A program made the position numbers and the translations under genes. From Entomortierella parvispora E1425 (Eukaryota; Fungi; Mortierellomycota), in contig BQFW01000012.1 in NCBI GenBank assembly GCA_020891255.1, positions 2,657,977 to 2,721,976 on the forward strand: DNA of 64,000 nucleotides. The letters run 5' to 3'. The notes under the pieces were generated by a model that saw only the letters and a list, made by a program, of their open reading frames with translations, did no database searches and was not told where the DNA came from. This document shows, piece by piece, positions 11,937-50,409 of this stretch; positions within the stretch are counted from its first letter, which is position 1; each line of letters begins with the position of its first letter.

Positions 11937-14290
11937 TTAATCCTTCTTTGGAGGCTCGTTGTCCACAGTTGGACCATCTTGGGGAGATCCCGAGGAGCTA
12001 GAACCTCCGCTGGAGGCATTCTTTTTGTAGACCATCTCAAAGAGCTTGAGACTGCCCTGCTGCAAGTCGGTTGTCTCCTTTTTGATATCCTCAGCAGAGA
12101 CACTCTCACCCTTCTGAAGAACGTCACGGAGTTTGGTAATCTGATCCTTGATCTTTGAAGCCTCTGTAGAGTCCAATTGGTCCTTGAATTCGTCCATGTG
12201 CTTCTCAGTCTCCGTGATGACCGACTCTGCCTGGTTGGTAGCCTCGATTTGCTCTCTCTTCTGACGATCAGCCTCGGCGAACTTTTCAGAATCGCGGATC
12301 ATGTTCTCGATCTCATCCTTGGAAAGACCTGACGAAGCCACAATGGACATGGATTGATCGCGACCGGTGGCCTTATCCTTGGCCCCGACGTTTACAATGC
12401 CATCAGCGTCAATGTCGAACGAGACCTCGATTTGAGGGACGCCCTTGGGTGCTGGTGGGAGTCCATGGAGGTTGAAGTCGCCCAATAGCTTGTTGTCCCG
12501 GACAAGCTCACGCTCACCCTGGAATACTCGAATCTGGACCTGAGTTTGTCCATCTGCGGCGGTGGAGAACACCTGTGATTTTTTGGTGGGGATAGTCGTA
12601 TTTCTGTTGATAAGGCGCGTGAAAACACCCCCGAGAGTCTCAATTCCAAGAGAGAGGGGTGTAACATCCAGTAGGAGAATGTCGGTAACAGAGCCCGCAA
12701 GAACACCACCTTGGATGGCGGCACCGATGGCAACGGCCTCGTCTGGGTTAACCGACTTGCCTGGCTCACGACCGAAGACTTGCTTGACAGTCTCAATGAC
12801 CTTGGGGACACGCGACATACCGCCGACCAAAACAACATCGTCGATATCCTTCAAACTGACCCCAGCATCCTTGATGGCCTTTTTGCAGGGTTCAATCGTG
12901 CGCTCGATCAGGTCCTTAGCGAGACTCTCGAACTTTGTGCGTGTAAGCTTAAAGTTGATGTGCTTGGGGCCAGTGGCGTCGGCGGTGATATAGGGGAGAT
13001 TGATGTCCGTCTGCACGGTGCTCGAAAGCTCAATCTTGGCCTTTTCAACTCCCTCACGGATACGCTGGATAGCCATTCGGTCCGTCGACAGATCAATGCC
13101 TTGGTCCTTTTTGAACTCCTCCATCACGTACTTGACCAGGAGTGCGTCGAAGTCTTCACCTCCAAGTGCTGTGTCACCGTTTGTCGACTTGACCTCAAAA
13201 ACACCGTTCTGAATCTCCAGAATTGAAATATCGAACGTTCCGCCTCCAAGATCGTACACTGCCACAGTTTTGTCCGCTGTCTTGTCTAGTCCGAATGCAA
13301 GTGCGGCAGCCGTAGGCTCGTTGATCACGCGCAGCACATCCAAGCCGGCAATTGTGCCAGCATCCTTGGTCGCTTGTCGTTGGGCGTCGTTGAAGTAGGC
13401 GGGGACTGTGATGACTGCATGTTTGACCTTCTTTCCAAGATAGCCGTCGGCGGTGTCCTTCATCTTGCCCAGGACAAAAGCGCTGATTTGTGAAGGCGAG
13501 TACTTTTTGCCACGGGCCTCCACCCAGGCATCGCCGTTATCGGCCTTGACAATCTTGTACGAGACAGTTTTGATATCGTGCTGGACAGCAGGGTCGGAAA
13601 ACTTGCGTCCGATGAGACGCTTTGTGGCATAGATGGTGTTTTCGGGATTGACAACGGCCTGGCGTTTGGCAGCTTGTCCGACAACCATCTCGCCCTCTTT
13701 GGTAAATGCAACGACAGACGGGGTGGTACGGGCACCTTCTGCGTTCTCAATCACGCGTGGGGCTTTTCCCTCCATGACACTGACGCAGGAGTTGGTGGTT
13801 CCTAGATCGATACCGATGACGGGACCTTGGATAGCGGCGGCAAACGTGCGCCGTTGCTGCAATGACAAAAAAGATCGAAAAAGAGAACGACAGGTCACGT
13901 TAATAGCTGCTTTTGGATCGCAGTCACAGCAACAATGAGACCCAGGAAATGCGCGCATTCGTCAGCCTGTGGTGTTGATGCATGCACCCAGCAGAAGGAA
14001 GGGGGCATTGTCAACAAACAACACTGAAAGGAAGGGTTGCATTGAGTTCTTTGTGGGTGAATGCAGGACATTGGAGTCATTGATTCCCACCCCCTCTAAA
14101 CGCGCCATGTATTTCAACAGCCGCTGATGTACATTCAACAGCAGACCAACTCCAGTGGATATTCTCAGAATGTCAAGGAAGGCAAGGATGCATTCTGTCA
14201 GTCTGCGTCTTCTTTCCAAAGTGCTTTGCTTACCAGAGTTGGTGTGGACATTCTCCAGCCACTTCTGGCCATGGTTGCGAGGCGATACAT
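11937..14290 (-). CDS. SSC1: Mitochondrial Hsp70 (DnaK-type), 2 exons
   Basis: Exon 1 [19 protein letters not shown] (14290-14234, presequence-like, GTAAGC donor); exon 2 from ~13857 with [33 protein letters not shown]. No cytosolic EEVD terminus. Confidence 0.97.
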
Positions 14291-14570: not shown

Positions 14571-16490
14571 TCAGGGTGCGCTCGACGACTCTGCCAGTTC
14601 ACCACTGAGAATCTCGTAACCATGCTCCGTTACCAGCACCACGTCCTCCAGGCGGATGCCATATCTAGTTTCATTGTGTAGAAGAGGGAGGGAAAAAGTT
14701 CAGCAACTTAAGTGGTGGGAATTCATTCATCACTCCGGTCACTTACTCTCCTTCAACATAGATGCCAGGTTCGTTCGTGAAGACCATTCCGGGCTTGAGT
14801 TCCGTATCAGTATTTCCAATGTTCAGGTAGGGCTCCTCATGGCCATCCATGCCAAGACCATGGCCGAGACGGTGCGTGAACTTTGCACCGTATCCTTCAT
14901 GACTGATCAACGAGCGCGCAGCCTTGTCGATCGAGCTGCAAGCAGCACCTGGATGAATCGCGTTCAAGGACGCGTTCTGAGCTTGCTTGACAATTCTCCA
15001 TACCTTGTCCAGCTCCTCATTCAGCTCCTTGCTTGGACCCTTGGAGACCCAGAAAGTACGCGTGATATCGGACAAGTATCCGTGCAAACGCGCACCAGTA
15101 TCGATCAACACCATCATACCCGTTTCCAGCTTAGTGTCATTACCGCTGCCGTGAGGCAGAGCTGCGTCTTTACCAAAAAGCACTAAACTGCCACCATCTT
15201 CATAGTCCAGTCCAGCCTCCTTGTACGCACGAGTCATTAACGTTTGAACCTCAGACTCGAGAATACCATCTCTGATCTCATTCTTCACCGCACGAATCAC
15301 TTTGACAGAGGTCTGGGATACACAGCGAAGAATCTCCACCTCGTGAGCTGTCTTTTGCATTCGCAAAAGAGCAATGGCTCGATTTGCAATCATTACTTTT
15401 CTTGTTGACGACTCCAAGGCAGTTGAGAGACCGTGGGAAACAAACTGGCGCATGTCTGGATCGATGTAGACGTGGTCAATATCCTTTGGCTTTTTGCCAT
15501 GACCTCCCAGGTCCTCTTCGGTACTGTCCTCATCCGGACCAGCCCAGGGGCTATCAAGCACCTCTTGCACAACCTTGTAGGCAGATCCACCTTCTTCCCA
15601 GGTCTTGATGGAGATGCTGGCTCCGGGCATTAAACCCTGGCGAGCACGCGATGCCTCAAAGGCGGGTGCAACCAAAGTGGCCTTTGTCAAGACTGCTTCA
15701 CAGTAAAGTAGAGTGGCGTTAATGGTTGATCCGTCCCGAAACTGAAGGAGTGCACGATAACTTCTATTTACCTTGATTAGTCTTGTCCCGTTTGGCCTGC
15801 ACGACAAGCAGGAAGGGGCGCTCTGACTGAGACCAATTGATGTTTGCAAAGTATTTCATGTTGGTGCCCGGCTCGGCAATATAAGCGGTTGCCTTGAGGT
15901 CTACAAGCAGACGCGAGAGGTTTGTCTGACGCTCCTCAAATTCAGCAAGACCGATGGGCTGGACATGATCGCAGGACCCTTTCAGGTGGCGGAAAGGTGC
16001 GCCGCCGCTGTGTCTACGTTGTAAAAAAGAGGGGATTCAATGACATATTCTGCTTTTCGCAACACAGAGAGTGAATCTCGTCCCAAAACCATTTTGATCC
16101 AGTCCAACGACGCGCATGATATTTTCTTAGCGTGCTTTTCCCTCCATCTCGTTTTTCTTACCCTCTGACCATGTCGAACAATGCAAGAAGAAGGAATGCG
16201 AGTAATGCTAACAAGATTGTAAAAAGGCCAAATCTCCAGCATCTTTGAACAGACTCTTGTCGTTGCTGCTGTTCAAATGAGCTTGGTCGTCGACCAAGGG
16301 CCGTAGGGATATGAGAACGCGCCTGCGCCTCTCCGCCGACTCCCCCTCCGACGCCATTCCCGATTCCGTTGGTGTTGTAGGCACCGTTACCGCTGCTGGC
16401 GTTACGACCATGACCATTCAAAAGAGGCTGGCGCTCGAGATCTGGAGTGCTTGGCAGCGGCACATTGTTGGCACCATTAAGTGCAGCCAT
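14571..16490 (-). CDS. M24-family Xaa-Pro amino/dipeptidase with N-terminal type II membrane anchor
   Basis: Metal-binding motifs IDTGARLHGYLSDITRTF, HRLGHGLGMDGHEEP, FTNEPGIY, and final exon YGIRLEDVVLVT (stop 14571). First exon has the TM segment RFGLFTILLALLAF. Confidence 0.9.
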
Positions 16491-16845: not shown

Positions 16846-19015
16846 TCACACCTCAAACCTCGCCACCTTCCGCTTGCCTCCCTCCACATGGATATAGCTG
16901 TCGGTGCTTTCATATAGTTCCTCGTACGAAAAGTCGCGCTTGTAGTCCGACACCAGGACTCCTGTCCGCACAAAGAACCAGAGAAAAGCGCCAAGGTATG
17001 CGACCGCAAACAAAATAAGTGACCGCATGACGAAAACCTCTGAGAACATTGGCGGCGATTGACCCTCGCGTAAGGGGATCTCCTGGGAGTAACGGCTGGG
17101 ATTGTGGAAGAAGCCAAAGAAGAGGATCGATCCCCAGGTTACAGGCGCAATATAGTTTTGTAGTTGAGTGAAGTTGCGGATCAATCGTGCACTATGAAAG
17201 ACAGGATTGACACACGAAGCAATATGAACATGACGTCTAAGATTTGACAAGAAGGACATGAGCTCTAAGCAAACCTGAACATTTCCCATACCTTGTGCCC
17301 CAGGAGTTGTCGTAGAGCGTCAGCGCGGCAAATATCTTTGCTGGAACATATCCAAGCATGTACAGAAGACCATAAATAGTGGTAAAGAAGAACTTTTTGT
17401 CTCCTGTGACGCGCACTGCGTAAGCAGTCTTGAGGAGACCTACGAACGCGATTGACACCAACCACCAAGACATCTGGGATCCTGTGCCGAAGTAGATGCA
17501 GTTGACAAGATTATAGATCATCATCATTGGGTAGATCAATTGATAAAGAAGCGCGTAGGTCATCCATGGGCTGTGAAGGTGCATGCAGCCAAGCTGGATG
17601 GGAATCTCCCGAAAGAATGACTTTGACCACCGTGTTTGTTGTGTGACCCAGGCGATGAAGCGAATGGGAGTGTCGGTGTAGCAGATAGCGTAGTGCGTGA
17701 ACTTGACCTTATATCCCTCTCTCAAGACCAGGTTGGTGAGATGGCGGTCATCTCCGTAGGTGCAGAGAACACCCAGGAAAGACTGCTTCGCCCAGTTATC
17801 CATCACCTCTGCTACAATCGACATGCGATATATCCCGAGAGGTCCAGATACACAATTGACGACACTGTGGTAAGATTGAGCGCCACGCTCCAAGTTGAAG
17901 GCAAACCAATACCGGAGCGAAGAAAGAAAACTGACCCAGGTCCCAGTATTGTAGATCCTGACATCTCCTGTTGCCGCTCCTACGACAGGGGACTCCGATA
18001 GAGCAAAAGCAAGTTCTATAACACAATGGATCCACCCTTTGATTAGTCCATGGTGGTGCCTATTGAGAATGTCAACTGCTCTATTTTTTTTACCTTTGCA
18101 GACATGAGGGTCCAGATAGGTGTCGGAATCTGTCACCACAACCGACTCAATTCCTTGCTGAAGGAAAGCAGCAAACCCAGTGTACATGGCCGCGCGTTTG
18201 CCGCGGTGTGGCTGCATGACACAGACTGGGCCTGGGTGATAGGCAATCTCTCGAACGAGTTCTTCGCGCGCTTTGTCTTGGGCGGTACGGTCCATACACA
18301 AGAAATCAGGGCGAAAGACGACCGCACCTTGGGATCCAAACACCTTCTTGAAGATTTGAGCCATGTACTCGTCCTGGGCTTCGTTTCCATCAACGACAAG
18401 TAGAATTCTTTGGTTGCGCTGGTAGCGCATGGCATGCAAGCTCTTGAGACAACCTTCGAGGAGCACCGGATCCTCACGGTATCCAACGGCAAGGATACCC
18501 GTGGATAGACCAACCCAGTGTGGGTCGCGTCTCTTCACCCTTGTATTAACACGACGTCGATTGAGGGCACTAAAGCTCACAACGGCCATGAAGTCTACGG
18601 CCATCAGCATACCGTAGGTTACTGAAGTTTGCCAGGCGCCAGCAGATACTTGAACATGAAAGCAAGCCTTAAGAATAACGTAGGGGAGTAAGAAGATGAC
18701 CATTGTGAATGCAATCCAAGCCGCTTTCTTCCAGAGAGATACATGCGACGACTTCAAACCAAAGCTTTGTGCAGTAATAGCCTCGTTCTTGAATGATGCA
18801 AAGGAGGGGCCATGAAGGCTCTCTGAAACGGACGTATTAATGAGATTACTGTGTCGATCACTTTTAGAGTTGCTTTGGGGTTCGGGCGCGTGGGCCAATA
18901 TACTCTGGTCGATAGACAAACTTGCACCATTGTCTGGTGCAGGATCTTTTGGAAGAACATCCTCGTGCATCTCCGTCTCCTGCACAAATGTCTCCAACGG
19001 CGGTTGAGGAGGCAT
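16846..19015 (-). CDS. Class I hyaluronan synthase-like GT2 glycosyltransferase
   Basis: YREDP, VVDGN, GKRAAMY, TDSDT, SGPLGIYR, GDDRHLTN, QQTRWSKSFFRE and WGTSAR (after splicing) motifs, plus flanking TM helices. In-frame intron ~18016-18094 and second intron ~17199-17289. Confidence 0.88.
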
Positions 19016-22749: not shown

Positions 22750-25700
22750 ATGCGGATACAGGAGGCAGGCATCCCAAAGTCAAGTGTTCCCTTCCCGTCT
22801 GCCACCATCAACCTCAGCATGCCGCACAACAATCCTCCAGCACCGCCCATGCCGCGGCTGAACGCCGAGGAAGCAGAATTTTGGCATGCAAAGGTCAAGT
22901 AAGTATTCATTTTGTTGATGAAGATATACATTGGCATGACTGAAGGTGATGCTGTTACTGATGCATCAATACCTTCTGTTAGAGCCATGCCCCCTAGTTC
23001 TCCAGATTTCAATTGCATTCTACCCGGATGCCCTAATTCATACCAAACAAAGCAGGGCTTGGAACGACACTTTACAGCAATCCATCTTCCAAAAGCTGAT
23101 GAGGGTCCGAAGCATACGCGATCAGCGGTGAGGCCAGCAACTGTTCAAGACGACGTGCCTGGGCGCCCACCTCGCAGTCCTGCAAAGCGACGCAGAGACT
23201 CGCGCTCACGTAGAGTCCGCACAGGCCGCAAGGGGCGGCCACCAGGATCTGGAATGAAAGCTCGACTGTTGAGTCTTGCGCAGCAGGATGCCAGTGGATC
23301 CCTGTCTGGTGAACATGAGTTTCATCACCTACAATACCCGGATCATCATACCAACCATTCTCTACTCGCCAGCCACCCTGCTTCTTCTCGTCATGACCAC
23401 GGAGAGGACGAACACAAACCAAGAGAAGAGCGTTCGTTCGTAGAGTTCTTTCCGTTCCTCAAAACATCAGTGCGACTGGATATCGTGGACATCAGACGCG
23501 CTGGGCTGCCTTTGACATTGCCTGGAAATATCTTAAAGCCATCAAAAGTTGCATCGGAACGGGATGAGTCAAGTCGTATGCGCTCTGGCTCTGGTATGAA
23601 GGTCGAGGAAATTGAGGAGGGGAGTCGTTTGTCAGCAACAGGGTCAGCACTGGATTCTGTTCAACCAATGATGGACGACCCACAGGCTCCCCAAAAGGCA
23701 TCTTCGAATCTTCTGGCGAGTACCGAACCGACTATTGAAACAGACACTACGACAGACATGGATATGGAGGTCATAGAGGATGGAGATGGCGAACCTTCAT
23801 CTGACCCAGATGTATTTTTTGACGCCAAAGGATTTATCGATGGCGACATGGACCACAGTCAAAGAGCAGCCGGTTCACAGGACGAGCAGGCGAGCAATCT
23901 GCCCAAAGCGCAAATCATGGATCCAAAGGGTGTTGCTGATGATGTGACTCCTATGGATGTTGATGAAACGACCACCGTCACTATTGAGCCGACTACCACC
24001 GTAAAGCCGACAGAACATAAGGATGGCGAGGCAGCTTCGGTGGCATCTCGGATCGAGCAGCCAGCTACCGTACGACCATCTATCGCTGACACATTGCCAT
24101 CCAACGGATCTGCCACGCACTCGTCATACCCGAACAATGTTAAGCAGACTCACTCTGCGCTAGGTACTTCACTGGAACCGAAGACGCCAATGTCGCTTTT
24201 GCCAAAATCTTCGTTTCGCCTCATTCCTCGAGAAGACGATGACCTGGAGGAGTACCATTTACCGACTGGTCACAACATTCGTTATATCGGTAATTCTACG
24301 TTGATGGGTGCGAATCAATATTGCGACTTTCCTATTGCGATCTCCATGCTAACAAACATTCATTCCCTGACAAAACAGAGCCCACCGAAACTGAACTGGC
24401 GGAGAGAGTGGAGTATGACATGGACGAGCAAGGTATGTGTACTTGACAGACCTGTATAGGCGCAATGAACAGTGGCTAAACATTTCTACGCTGGTAAATA
24501 TAATAGACGAACTTTGGCTTAAGGAACTCAATGCTGAGCGACGCAAGCAGGATTTGGGTGATGTCAGCTCTTCGATGTTTGAAAGGATTTTTGATCGCTT
24601 GGAGAAGGAATGGTTTGACCTCGTAAGTTGACACCGTACTGTGAATGGACGCTATTCAAGGCACAAACGATGGATTAACAGTTGTAATCTATGGCTTTAG
24701 ACAAAAAACATACCCAAGCCAACTGAGAATCTGCCTCCAGAGGATTCGGCGTGTAATATTTGCGACGACGGCGAGTGCGAAAACAGCAATGCGATTGTTT
24801 TTTGTGATGGCTGCAACCTTGCCGTTCATCAAGGTATGATAGTGAAGGTCTTCTGGGCCACGATTGGAACGTATGGACGATTGTTCTCATTATTAATTGT
24901 ACTAATTCATTTCTTCTTGACACTGTATAGATTGCTACGGTATCCCTTATATTCCAGAGGGTCAGTGGCTATGCCGGAAGTGCATGTTGTCGCCTCAGAT
25001 GCCTGTGTCGTGTATCTTTTGTCCAGGAGAAGGAGGAGCCTTCAAACAAACAACAAATAATCGATGGGCACATTTGCTCTGTGCAAGCTGGATCCCAGAG
25101 GTCGGCGTGGCCAACACGGTGTACATGGAACCCATCGACAACATCGACAAGATACCCGCCAGTCGCTGGAAGCTGACTTGTTACATTTGCAAACTCAGGA
25201 TGGGGGCCTGTATCCAATGCGAGACAAAGAACTGCTTCCGTGCTTTTCATGTCACCTGCGCAAGAAAGGCGCACCTGTACATGAAGTCGAAGCTGTCCAA
25301 GGTAGCCCACGCAGGAGGCGAGGTTCTCATTTATCGAGCTCACTGTCACAAGCACACACCAAGGGATCACAAGGCAGACTTGGATCTTGCGGGGGCAGCT
25401 GCCTTGTTTGCGAACAAAAATCTCAAGAAGAAAAGGAGAGCCAAAGCCCTTATTCTCGATGATGATAGCGATGACCCGGATTTCGACCAAAGTGAAACGG
25501 AAACCGGATCAAGTCGACGAAAGTCGAAGTCTGGAGGCGACAAGGCACCAAAAAATACCGTTACAACCCAGGCGCTTGGTGGATCTAGGACATCCAAGGC
25601 AGCCTTGGCCCATCAGAAGCACTATACTCCTGGTGCTCCTCTAGCACCTTCCTACATCGTCAATCGGTTGGTGCCGTTCGTAAGCAAGTTGGGCGTCAAG

Positions 25701-28700
25701 GCAACGGCGCAGCGCAAAGCTTCTGCACTTAGCTTTCTCTACACCATTTGCAAATATTGGTCTCTCAAGAGAGAGTCGCGTCGTGGCGCACCGCTTCTGA
25801 AGCGTCTCCACTTGGAACCATGGACGGCATCAGCTTCAGCCCATCGCCAAACAGAGGAGGAGAAGGCCAAGAAGCTTCAGACACAGCTTCTACTTCGAGG
25901 TGACCTGGAAAAAGTTCGTATGTTGGCCGAGCTCGTTAGGAAACGCGAAAGGGCGAAGCTGAAGCGGCAGGAGCTTCAAAATCGTTACCTCTGCAAGATC
26001 ATGTTTCCTCTCAAGACAATTCTGGAGGATACTCTCGTGGAACTTGAAAAGTAAGATGTTGCGCTGGCTCATATTTTTGTCCAATACATTGCCTGGTACT
26101 AATTCACTTTTTTTTTTTTAATGGGATTCGTTTTGTTAGACATGATCGCCAAAAGTTTTTCGCCTACCCAATTTCTGCTGAGGAGGTCAAGGACTATCAC
26201 GATGTGATCAAGAATCCCATCTGTTTTCAAACGATGAACGAGAAACTTATAGCCCACAAGTACCAAACGGTGGAAGAGTTTGCAGTAAGTGTCTTATTTG
26301 TTGAATTGGCCTGAAAGTCAGCTTCTCCTTTCTCTTGCACTTGTGCTCATTTAGTACTTGACTCCTATTAGGATGATGCACGGCGAATCTATCGAAACTG
26401 TATGACCTACAACAACGCGGATACGCCTTATTACAGAGCAGCAGCACGCCAATCAAAGCTAGCGGAAGGTCTTTTGAAGAAGGCAAAAGAAGAATACGAG
26501 AGACTGGATATTGACCCTCGTACAGGATTTTTGGCTGTTCCAATCGACCGCGAGATCTTCACCTACAATTTGGTTCCATTTCAAAAACAAGGGGAGGAGG
26601 AACAAACTATGGATGATGACAGCACGTCTTCAACACCTGTCAGATCGTCTCCTGCTCTCACACCTAGGGCAAAGAAAAAGGAAATTCACCTGGATAGCCC
26701 AAAGATTCCTCAAGTCTCCGGAAACACGCCCAGATTGACAAGAGCGAGAGAGGCCAAGTTAGGAAACCAGCCAACAGCAACCTCTCCACCGCAGAAAGCC
26801 AAGCAGACGCTGGATCAGACCTCAGGATTCCGCTCCCCCTCAAGAGCTCAAAAGCCCATGGCGCCAAAGCTCAAAACCGCTACACTCACACGAGCTGACA
26901 TGGCTAAGGCGCGGCAGGGAGTGGATGATGCGACTCGACCCAAATTGGACGAGGAAGATGAGCTTTTGGAACGACTCAAGTCAAAGTCGAAGAAATCGAG
27001 ATCTCTTGCTGTCAATCTTCAGTCTCGTCTCAAGCCATCGATCGTCGATAAGGCGGTCGTCATTGACAAGCCTGCTCCAAAAGGATGGGCGTACGTCGTA
27101 GTAGAAGGCGAGGAGGACACGACTGAAGGAGAAGACGATGAGGACGATGCAGCTCAGCCCGCCGGGAAGGTAGAAGCTGGCTCTGGCTCCAGCGCTGGTG
27201 CGGAAGCTGATGCTGATGCCGATGCCGACGCCTACGAGGCAGAGGCTGGAGCTGATGCAAATTCTGGTGCCGATGTTGCTTCCGAGAGCGAGGCTGAGGA
27301 TACAGATGCAAGCAGTAATGAGAGCGAAGGCGGACAGATCCCGAAAGGAACTGCAGAGGACAGAACAAAGAGCGCGACAACTGATAACGATTTCGAGGAC
27401 AACGACTCTCCATCGGAAGAAAGCGCCGTAGACAGCGATCGCGAGGACGACGTGAAGGATGAAAGCGAAGGCGAGGAGAATCAGGAAAACGACAGCGCCA
27501 GTGATAAAGAAGGATCAGAAGAAGGATCAAGTCTCGTCCCGGAGCCATTGAGTAATGGAAACGACCGAACTGATAGCGACTATGATAGTCAGTTGGGCGA
27601 GGATGAGGAAGAGACGATAACCTTTGGAGGAGAGCAGCAGGAGGACATGGCCATAGGTGGAAAGCATGAGGATAAAGAGTCCGTGACTGAGGCCAAGGGG
27701 TACCACAAGTCTCTCTCCGCCGATGTTGAACCTCCTCGAAAGCGACAAAAACGCTCCGTAGCTAGCCTTCCCGAGGATGACGATCTCAAGGACGAGCCCG
27801 CAAGCTCCTCCACTCGTCGGCTCCGGTCATCCGAAGCAGCATCAACCCTGCCTGCGCACACAGGTCGTTCAAGGAGAGGAAGTCCTGGGAGTCAAAAGGA
27901 CAAGGCTGTTGTTGACATTGCTGGTGAGTAATGAGCTCCTCACATCGCCTTGACTCCGTTCCACAGATATACCTTGTTCCTGGGGTGTTGGCGTGTCGCA
28001 TTCGTTGTAAATTATAATCAATAACATCCAATCTGGAGCCCAGATCTTTATTCATTTCTGGTGCAGTGTCCTCCATGACTTGTACTTTCTCTCCTTTATT
28101 AATACAACTCTGCAAAACTGTTATCTGACCACAACTTCATTGGCAATGTCTTCCTGCAAAATAGCAAAGAGGCGGCGACAAACGACGGCGGAAGGCCCTG
28201 TCAAGCGTCAAAAGACCGAAAGAACTGGCGCTCCTCTTCCTTTTGGGTCCTTAGTTTGGGCAAAAATGGATGGCTTCCCATGGTTTCCTGCTGAGGTATG
28301 TCGCGCCGCTCTTTTATGTTGGTCTACCCTTGAGTCAAGTGGCCAACAACATACTGTGGTTGTGTGGACTCACAATCCAACTTGAACTATTGTCCTATTA
28401 TCAACCTCTTTAGCTGATGAATCCGAAAGGATCGAAAGTACCGGAACAGGTTCTGGAGATGAAACGCGAAGGCGGAGGGCTCCATTTAGTTCAATTCTTT
28501 GATCTGAATGAACGAGGCGATCGAGGCCGATCTTGGTACTGGGTCATGACATCTCAAGTCTCCCCACTAGGTGTGGATTTGGAGGAAGACCGGAAACGTA
28601 TCCATCTAAAGACTGGGTGGACACCCAAACGTAGAAAGTCGGTTAAACTCGCTTACGTGGATGCCTGCCAGTCCAAAGGAGTGGACTCGACTGCCGTTAT

Positions 28701-48892: not shown

Positions 48893-50409
48893 TTATTTCT
48901 TCATTAATGGCTCCTCAAACCGCGCGTGGTTGATGATACCGCACATGCGCTCTGTGACATTGAAGGTGGACCATCCGGGCCCTGCACGGCAGTTTTTACA
49001 AAACTTCGAAGGATCCTTCTTGACAATTTTCTTCCACTCATAGAACTGTGAACGATCCGCCTCTTTGATGAATGTCGCCACCTGCTCGAAGTTATCAAAC
49101 CTCGATGCATCTATGAAGCTCCCCTCTGGCACAAAATCGGAGACATCCGCAGCCCCGAGATAGATCGGAATTGCCCCCACCTCCAGAGCGTTATAGATCT
49201 TTTCCGTCACGTAGCCTCGGCAGTTTGAATTCTCAGCTGCAAAGACAAAGGGTATCCTGCAAGAGCCTTCGGCTTCTTTGGTTGCCAATCGCCCCAGCCA
49301 CTTGGTAGATTTTCCTTGGCCAATCCTTGCGGGAGGACCATGTTGTTTTTAAGCAACCTCCATATGAGTGAGCACCGGTTTTGTTGATCAGTACTTCCAT
49401 GAGCTCATTGCGACGGTTCTTGGGCCAACAGTTGTCAACCAACATGACGACATAGTTCTCAGGCGTTTGATCTACTGGGAAGGCAGGTGGTAGGCTGGCC
49501 AGCTCTAGAGCTTTCTTTTCGGAGATGTCGTATATTGGCAGAGGAATGTCCATGATTGCAGGAGGAGAACCCATCGATAAATCGAACAAGTTCAAATAAT
49601 GAGGCAGCCCTATATGGGGGTAATAACCTGCCGACTCTCCTTGCCACCAGAGAACCCACTTTTGATGTGAAAGTCTTGGTGGCAAGTTCGCCAGATCGAC
49701 ATATGGCACTTGGTCAGACCAGTCGGAATACGGGTAGTCAAAAAAAAATGATGCTGGCGTCTTCAAAATCGGCATAGTTGGTGGTTATGATGTAGTCGAC
49801 TTCGCCGTAGTTGGAGGTAGTACAGGTTTGCTTCGGGTAGGAGACTTCACCATAGGCCAATGTCCACAAAATGCACGGGGCGTAGCCTACGTCCCATTTG
49901 ATATTCGAGTCCTGGATGCGGGTTTCCAAAAAGTGATCAAAGAACGGCTGCAGCACCAAGGGGATGGGGCACATGGTCAATGACTCTTTGGGCCAGTCGA
50001 CGCCGAAGGACGAGTGCCATGTGAAAATCTTGATGGGTTCCTTGTTACTTTTGGCAAGGTGCATCTCCCTTGGGTGTCGAGGCTTCACTAAATGGTTACA
50101 GAAGTCGACCTGATCTGTAGGCTTGATCGATAGGCCAGGGTCAGAATTGTTGAAGAGGTGAATTGCAGTCGGCCTCGGAGTTGGCGACGTTGCTGTCAGA
50201 TCAGAAGTTGGAGGACCAGAGACTGATATGATGGAGAGTGTAGAGGAAGTTCCTGCTTCTTTAAGCCCTATGACGGACGACGCACGAGTCGTCGAGTCAT
50301 CCTCGACTTGTTGACGAATGCGAAGCAGGTACAGCTGCAGTAGCACAATGGAGACGACAACGGCCCCGGCCGCGAGGCGAACAATTGCAGAGTGAGAGGG
50401 CCTAGTCAT
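48893..50409 (-). pseudogene. GT10 alpha-1,3/4-fucosyltransferase, interrupted by 2-3 frameshifts (pseudogene or assembly error)
   Basis: Type II TM anchor (VRLAAGAVVVSIVLLQLYLL), WQGESAGYY, SYGGCL, and the GT10 motif FVFAAENSNCRGYVTEKIYNALEVGAIPIYLGA are split over three ORFs with no intron signals. Shifts lie at a T9 run (49740-49748), an A5 run (49346-49350) and probably CCCTTT (~49247-49252). Confidence 0.85.

Follow-up and report, generated by a model that had tools for sequence, protein, structure and literature searches.

A class I hyaluronan synthase-like glycosyltransferase gene in Entomortierella parvispora and its relatives in early-diverging fungi

The window analyzed here, a stretch of 64,000 nucleotides from Entomortierella parvispora E1425 (contig BQFW01000012.1 of assembly GCA_020891255.1, positions 2,657,977 to 2,721,976 of the forward strand), encodes on its minus strand, at positions 19015..16846, a 663-amino acid protein of glycosyltransferase family 2 (GT2) that resembles class I hyaluronan synthases (HAS). 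An initial annotation, made from the DNA letters, had predicted such an enzyme with an intact reading frame and spliceosomal introns, and this prediction is borne out, down to the exact limits of the gene. Reading of the DNA combined with comparison to orthologs yields three exons and two introns, both with GT..AG splice sites (Table 1), with an ATG at 19015 and a TGA stop codon at 16848-16846. The coding sequence is spread over two open reading frames (ORFs), of 592 amino acids (19015..17240) and 147 amino acids (17289..16846); the former runs across intron 1 because this intron is in frame and free of stop codons. Removal of intron 1 brings the protein into exact length register with the Chlorella virus HAS (CvHAS), Xenopus HAS1 (XlHAS1) and the orthologs. 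The exon translations are colinear with the annotated orthologs P0001, P0004 and P0002 (residues 1-305, 307-546 and 548-661), each exon junction corresponding to exactly one residue, that of the split codon, and the junction peptides, DPHVCK-E-LAFAL and WGT-S-ARLIRNF, are the same or nearly so in these orthologs. It is on such comparative evidence that the predicted intron positions rest.

The motif set claimed in the initial annotation is present in full (GYREDP, HRGKR, DSDT, SGPLGIYR, GDDRHLTN and QQTRWSKS), with the refinement that WGTS, the beginning of the WGTS-A-R gating loop, is formed only once intron 2 has been spliced out; the W, G and T of this loop are invariant throughout the fungal family. 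The DSD, GDDR and QxxRW motifs follow each other in the order and with the spacing found in HAS. Hydropathy segments at approximately residues 96-125, 130-152, 490-511, 521-542 and 595-630 are colinear with HAS helices in alignments with the solved structures, and the exon 3 product is predicted to include a strong C-terminal hydrophobic helix (approximately residues 600-628).

Table 1. The HAS-like gene and other annotated genes of the window (positions in the window)
Feature	Positions	Strand	Description
Exon 1	18094..19015	-	307 codons and first base of split codon; non-conserved N-terminal ~90 amino acids, two predicted N-terminal hydrophobic helices (~residues 96-152); first half of GT-A domain with GYREDP, HRGKR and DSD (DSD 18130-18122)
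Intron 1	18016..18093	-	78 nt, GTAAAA...TTATAG; CTAAT branch-point-like site
Exon 2	17292..18015	-	240 full codons; interface helix 1 (SSLRYWFAFNLER), switch-loop Cys, SGPLGIYR, GDD (17755-17747), QQTRW (17641-17627), predicted channel helices with Lys of LLKTAYA, WGT (17302-17294)
Intron 2	17192..17291	-	100 nt, GTATGG...TTCATAG; interrupts Ser codon of WGTS (AG|T)
Exon 3	16846..17191	-	114 codons and TGA; completes gating loop (WGTS-ARL), then predicted C-terminal helix and short tail
Hsp70	11937-13958	-	895 bits; flanking gene, not glycan-related
M24 metallopeptidase	14743-15849	-	flanking gene, not glycan-related
PHD-like zinc-finger protein	24984-26054	+	flanking gene, not glycan-related
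GT10 fucosyltransferase domain	48986-49258	-	72 bits; ~30 kb from HAS-like gene

Searches were initiated with the exon translations and with the continuous 592-residue ORF, which includes the read-through of intron 1. Comparison with solved structures revealed highly significant similarity to XlHAS1 (8smm; E-value 2.9e-82) and CvHAS (7sp7; 5.9e-81), with alignments that are colinear along both structures except for the intron insertion, and the translation of exon 3 alone gave no match in PDB. The scores of the fungal protein against XlHAS1 and CvHAS (280 and 276 bits, respectively) exceed that of these two enzymes against each other (209 bits). In Pfam, only generic GT2 domains were detected, along with a partial match to Chitin_synth_2 (131 amino acids, 34.7 bits). 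The curated NodC model (TIGR04242, cut-off 550 bits) assigns 144 bits to the window protein and 151 bits to CvHAS itself. When exon 2 was used to search the genome (a Mortierellaceae assembly, G000, of 38.9 Mb in 20 contigs, with the window on contig C12), at least five genes resembling chitin synthases (CHS) were recovered as well; the CHS of this genome are only 25-28% identical to the window protein over the core and carry QRRRW where the window protein has QQTRW, in agreement with what the initial annotation had stated of fungal CHS.

Three phylogenetic trees were constructed: a FastTree tree of 295 rows with the genome's five CHS as the outgroup, an IQ-TREE tree of 101 rows under a site-heterogeneous model and a tree of 69 rows under LG+G4 with 1000 ultrafast bootstraps. 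The trees include three bona fide NodC proteins that score above the curated cut-off and leave out streptococcal HasA (SpHasA) and Cps1. Chordate HAS (Talpa, Zonotrichia, Lampetra and Branchiostoma), chlorovirus and giant-virus sequences and all the fungal HAS-like proteins form a single clade (support 100/100 and branch length 0.53 in the tree of 69 rows; 100* in that of 101 rows). The window protein does not cluster within the fungal CHS, the outcome that the initial annotation had named as counting against it: the genome's five CHS are cut off from the HAS clade by a long 100* branch, and NodC and the prokaryotic homologs likewise fall outside the clade in all trees. The possibility that the gene encodes a fungal chitin synthase was therefore rejected, given also the lack of QRRRW and GEDR and the only partial Pfam match, and so was its identification as NodC, from which it is separated both by a score far under the cut-off and by its position in the trees.

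Within the HAS clade, the window protein belongs to a group (97/90) that includes chytrids, Neocallimastigomycota, Gonapodya, Endogone, Basidiobolus and Mortierellaceae and that joins a Mucoromycotina clade and a clade of Basidiobolus and Dikarya at 89/89. Apart from these, the chytrids Rhizoclosmatium and Physocladia form a group that clusters with giant-virus and chlorovirus sequences (99/98) rather than with the main fungal clade, and genes may have passed between viruses and chytrids. The branching order among the deeper lineages of the clade lacks resolution in these trees. Several sequences in these trees are noteworthy in their own right. The Rhizoclosmatium and Physocladia proteins P0155 and P0200 are approximately 950 amino acids long, and P0155 additionally contains a GH16 domain (PF00722). 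The HAS-like proteins of two contigs binned as Gammaproteobacteria (L050 and L051) group with those of eukaryotes and giant viruses, inside their clade, rather than with the prokaryotic homologs, which suggests mis-binning or horizontal transfer. Long HAS-like proteins (530-1300 amino acids) from Basidiobolus, Basidiomycota and Saitoella (P0236, P0237, P0240, P0247, P0264 and P0274) form the sister group of the Mucoromycotina clade, and the wider family therefore extends to Dikarya too. Gonçalves et al. (PMC5122149), whose survey of chitin synthases employed HAS solely as an outgroup, describe a 'recombined' class of CHS in which the N-terminal half is HAS-like; the clade of long Basidiobolus and Dikarya proteins may correspond to this class.

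The assignment to the HAS family can be examined at the level of individual residues, whose roles are known from structural studies of CvHAS and XlHAS1 (PMC12987647, PMC11750622) and which were tabulated across HAS, NodC, CHS and the prokaryotic homologs. Four positions discriminate between these groups. In the uracil groove, CvHAS H174 is His in the HAS clade (Trp in chordates) and Asn in NodC, CHS and the prokaryotic homologs; in interface helix 1, XlHAS1 R287 is Arg in the HAS clade and the prokaryotic homologs and Glu in NodC and CHS; XlHAS1 F292 is Phe in the HAS clade and the prokaryotic homologs, Cys in NodC and His in CHS; and the GDD of the HAS clade and the prokaryotic homologs is GED in NodC and CHS. 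The core motif differs as well: NodC has QQLRW, CHS have QRRRW and the HAS clade has QQTRW. The window protein shows the HAS state at all four positions, with the Arg contained in SSLRYW, and has QQTRW. The R287 residue lies beside the second glucuronic acid (GlcA) unit, GlcA-2, of the nascent chain and is required for length control (PMC12987647, PMC11750622). Among the residues that contact hyaluronan or UDP-GlcA, K177, R341, R348, R296, C307, K448 and the W, G, T and R of the gating loop are conserved in the window protein; R348 is His in CHS, and R296 and K448 are channel residues near GlcA. The collar that holds the N-acetylglucosamine (GlcNAc) acceptor is conserved as well (Y288, F292, C307, the W of QxxRW, S385 and GDDR). 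The catalytic and UDP contacts E93, K177, D201/D203, D302, R341, W342, the WGT of the gating loop and, its His in CHS aside, R348 are also conserved and are non-discriminating, being shared with NodC and CHS. With similarity to the solved HAS, phylogeny and residues considered jointly, it is practically certain that the gene encodes a genuine class I (non-reducing-end) HAS-family GT2 enzyme.

The initial annotation had regarded class I HAS as typical of vertebrates, Streptococcus and chloroviruses, a description that proves too narrow, given that the family is not confined to these groups and includes hundreds of fungal homologs. A word search returned 715 relatives, the best 120 of which are all fungal or unnamed metagenomic entries; these 120 include Mortierellaceae (two paralogs each), Basidiobolus, Endogone, Neocallimastigomycota and many chytrids as well as Umbelopsis, Bifiguratus and Mucorales. 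An exhaustive search identified 273 cluster representatives at E <= 1e-30, and the named sample of these contains chordate HAS (Talpa, Zonotrichia, lampreys and amphioxus), the chytrids Gonapodya and Physocladia, and a clade of long proteins of Basidiobolus and of Dikarya, the latter from Pseudomicrostroma, Tilletia, Laetiporus, Neolentinus/Heliocybe and Saitoella. The vertebrate HAS were found only in this exhaustive search of representatives; the word search with CvHAS as the query returned none. Giant-virus contigs and prokaryotes also carry relatives. Streptococcus HasA was sought in 301 sampled Streptococcaceae genomes, which yielded only five homologs linked to UDP-glucose 6-dehydrogenase (ugd) at E <= 1e-15, those named being from Pilibacter, Lactococcus and Pseudolactococcus. 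Evidently, HAS-like genes are not rare in early-diverging fungi, and the family is already labeled in databases: in NCBI or UniProt, many of the fungal relatives bear the automatically assigned name 'Hyaluronan synthase 3' or simply 'Hyaluronan synthase'. Several orthologs are mis-named 'ATP-dependent RNA helicase'. The literature searched contains no paper characterizing a class I HAS of any early-diverging fungus.

The genome encodes a second HAS-like paralog (L002; contig C2:3754631-3758350) whose exons are broken at the same places as those of the window gene. The window copy is of a short, '~660-aa' type and the C2 copy of a long type with an N-terminal extension, and both types are found across genera. 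Over exon 2, the two copies show 92.5% protein identity and 78% DNA identity, with a nonsynonymous divergence (dN) of 0.05 and saturated synonymous divergence (dS), and the exon 2 protein is 94-95% identical to orthologs from other genera; both copies are under strong purifying selection. A deposited E. parvispora protein, P0024, matches the C2 copy with 640 identities over 640 aligned residues (intron columns discounted), which assigns the genome to that species or to a nearly identical strain. Its public name is 'mannitol-1-/sugar-/sorbitol-6-phosphatase', and it corresponds to residues 127-766 of the C2 copy; given that it stops where exon 2 ends, the public gene model looks mis-built.

Two eukaryote-type UDP-glucose 6-dehydrogenase (UGDH) genes, on contigs C14 and C2, were identified in the genome (E-values of about 1e-119 to human UGDH), and therefore UDP-GlcA is available to the fungus. 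Neither lies near a HAS-like copy, and the statement of the initial annotation that the window encodes no such enzyme holds, the genome search having produced matches on these two contigs only. Some relatives are organized differently. In Lactobacillales (Pilibacter, Pseudolactococcus, Vagococcus and Lactococcus), the homologs directly adjoin a UDP-glucose 6-dehydrogenase gene; six such loci (L054, L055, L059, L065, L066 and L078) encode a HAS-like GT2 protein of approximately 400 amino acids beside the dehydrogenase and look like has-type capsule operons, in genera that are not usually tied to hyaluronan. The HAS gene of PBCV-1 adjoins GFAT. On a contig of a giant-virus metagenome-assembled genome (L012), the gene immediately upstream of a HAS-like gene encodes a nucleotide-sugar dehydrogenase (L012:1721-2857 and L012:3037-4704). 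The best match of this dehydrogenase is a TviB-like UDP-GlcNAc C6 dehydrogenase (151 bits, compared to 58 bits for UDP-glucose dehydrogenase); the pairing hints at a polymer containing N-acetylglucosaminuronic acid (GlcNAcA).

The neighborhood of the fungal gene is not informative in this way. A gene cluster was considered and rejected, the neighbors being an Hsp70, an M24 peptidase and a PHD-finger protein, with the GT10 domain 30 kb off. The position given to this domain in the initial annotation is correct, and the wider surface-glycan theme that was read into it is not upheld, considering that the intervening genes are unrelated and that the genome has GT10 matches in at least six regions, at nine places altogether and with two pairs of nearby matches on contig C10.

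We propose, as the likeliest reading but one that is tentative and falls a little short of being probable, that the product is hyaluronan or a very close alternating GlcNAc/GlcA polymer; the donor sugars, the linkage and the expression of the gene are what we infer here. The proposal is favored by the higher scores of the protein to each proven HAS than those of the proven HAS to each other, by the clade shared with chordate and PBCV-1 HAS, by the HAS-only residues and the conserved UDP-GlcA and hyaluronan contacts, and further by the two UGDH genes, the purifying selection, the ugd-linked relatives in Lactobacillales and the PBCV-1 HAS gene beside GFAT. Under this scenario, the protein, one of two paralogs, would be a membrane-integrated, processive class I HAS-family GT2 enzyme whose donors would be UDP-GlcNAc and UDP-GlcA, the latter supplied by the genome's two UDP-glucose dehydrogenases. 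Both UDP-sugars would be bound at a single GT-A site formed by DSD, GDD, QQTRW and the WGTSxR gating loop. As CvHAS and XlHAS1 do, the enzyme would prime itself with GlcNAc and then add GlcA and GlcNAc in alternation at the non-reducing end, at one site, with the gating loop closing over the nucleotide, and the anionic chain would reach the hyphal surface through an electropositive transmembrane channel formed by the enzyme itself.

A number of observations weigh against this proposal. Class I HAS given UDP-GlcNAc alone make chitin oligomers, most of the catalytic residues are common to HAS, NodC and chitin synthases, and we know of no single residue that dictates the use of GlcA. The channel position of XlHAS1 H72 holds Asp in the window protein and Phe in CvHAS, and it varies across the family. 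No gene for a PL8 lyase was found in the genome; a search for GH56 hyaluronidase gave no genome match either and is uninformative, as the search control also gave none, and the one GH88-family gene that is present is not specific. Hyaluronan from Mortierellaceae or other early-diverging fungi is not reported in the literature searched. Finally, the pairing of the L012 gene with a TviB-like dehydrogenase rather than with UGDH makes diversity of products within the clade plausible.

The last but one of these points, together with the 144 bits against the NodC model, the partial Chitin_synth_2 match and the core of DxD, G[DE]D, QxxRW and WGT that is common to NodC and CHS, could also be read to mean that the protein, despite its HAS-like sequence, makes chitin or short chito-oligosaccharides for the wall or for signaling, in the manner of NodC or DG42, leaving UDP-GlcA unused. 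Vertebrate HAS are capable of making chito-oligomers, and fungi are reported to make chito-oligosaccharide signals for which, to our knowledge, no synthases have been named. We nevertheless consider such an activity unlikely. The protein lies far from the true NodC and from the genome's CHS in all trees; the score against the NodC model loses its force when the proven CvHAS scores alike; at least five CHS-like genes are already present in the genome, as the exon 2 search shows; and the HAS state at the four discriminating positions extends to the GlcA-contacting channel Arg, which is Glu in NodC and CHS.

A different acidic polymer, made on a HAS scaffold whose specificity for donors or linkages has changed, has to be considered as well: glucuronan, the backbone of a GlcA-rich wall polymer or exopolysaccharide (mucoran or mucoric acid), or a GlcNAc/GlcNAcA polymer. 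GlcA-rich polymers without a known synthase have been described for the walls of Mucoromycota (PMC10481521), the channel keeps its basic residues R287, R296 and K448, UGDH is duplicated in the genome, the viral relative is paired with a gene resembling UDP-GlcNAc 6-dehydrogenase, and the fungal clades stand apart from both proven HAS lineages, with only 35-45% identity. The GlcA-rich polymers in question are, however, documented for Mucorales and not for Mortierellaceae, and both characterized lineages that bracket the clade make hyaluronan. Moreover, the collar for the GlcNAc acceptor is conserved in full, which argues that GlcNAc is still among the sugars; we regard a polymer of this kind as rather improbable. 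Hardly credible is a silent or decaying copy without present function, given the intact frame, the canonical splice sites, the colinearity with orthologs from several genera, the 94-95% identity of exon 2 across genera and the low dN set against saturated dS in the comparison with the paralog.

By the usual account, hyaluronan belongs to vertebrates, chloroviruses and a few bacterial pathogens. It is possible, if somewhat doubtful, that early-diverging fungi use these enzymes for the synthesis of hyaluronan or of a closely similar, glycosaminoglycan-like polymer of GlcNAc and GlcA. If so, hyaluronan synthesis would be an old eukaryotic trait retained in several fungal phyla rather than a specialty of chordates, bacteria and chloroviruses, the enzymes could lie behind some of the as yet unexplained uronic-acid polymers in the walls of zygomycetes, and views of the fungal cell surface and of HAS evolution would be altered, with new microbial producers of hyaluronan added. 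Should the product turn out to be a chitin oligomer or another polymer, the family would show how little sequence change re-tunes the HAS scaffold. In either case, a conserved, duplicated HAS-family gene across most early-diverging fungal lineages, together with a sister clade that contains Dikarya, turns the presence of a glycosaminoglycan in fungi into a testable question.

Among the known systems, the chitin synthases of the same organism (L003-L007) share with the window protein membership in GT2, QxxRW and a predicted membrane channel and differ from it in QRRRW, GEDR and the Glu in interface helix 1. Rhizobial NodC, the next-nearest characterized family, shares the GT2 core of the window protein, is of comparable size and is distinguished by Asn, Glu, Cys and GED where the window protein has His, Arg, Phe and GDD. 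Fungal GT2 enzymes of the Cryptococcus Cps1/ZtGT2 type have reportedly been linked to hyaluronan-like polymers by King and colleagues in 2017; these enzymes resemble the pneumococcal type 3 synthase and not class I HAS. With CvHAS (PBCV-1 A98R), the fungal protein shares approximately 37% identity, including Y91, E93, H174, K177, D201, D203, Y299, GDD, QQTRW and R348; unlike the viral enzyme, it has WGTS instead of WGTR in the gating loop, and its gene has neither GFAT nor UGDH as a neighbor, the viral clade branching apart from the main fungal clade. The vertebrate enzymes HAS1-3, exemplified by XlHAS1, are approximately 38-40% identical to the fungal protein, which differs from them in the His of the uracil groove (Trp in vertebrates), the Asp at the H72 position, an additional N-terminal region of approximately 90 amino acids and a different C-terminal tail. 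Nevertheless, the fungal protein is colinear with XlHAS1 over approximately 480 residues, possesses the same motif set, conserves R287, Y288, F292, R296, C307, K448 and the WGTSxR gating loop, and belongs to the same fully supported clade.

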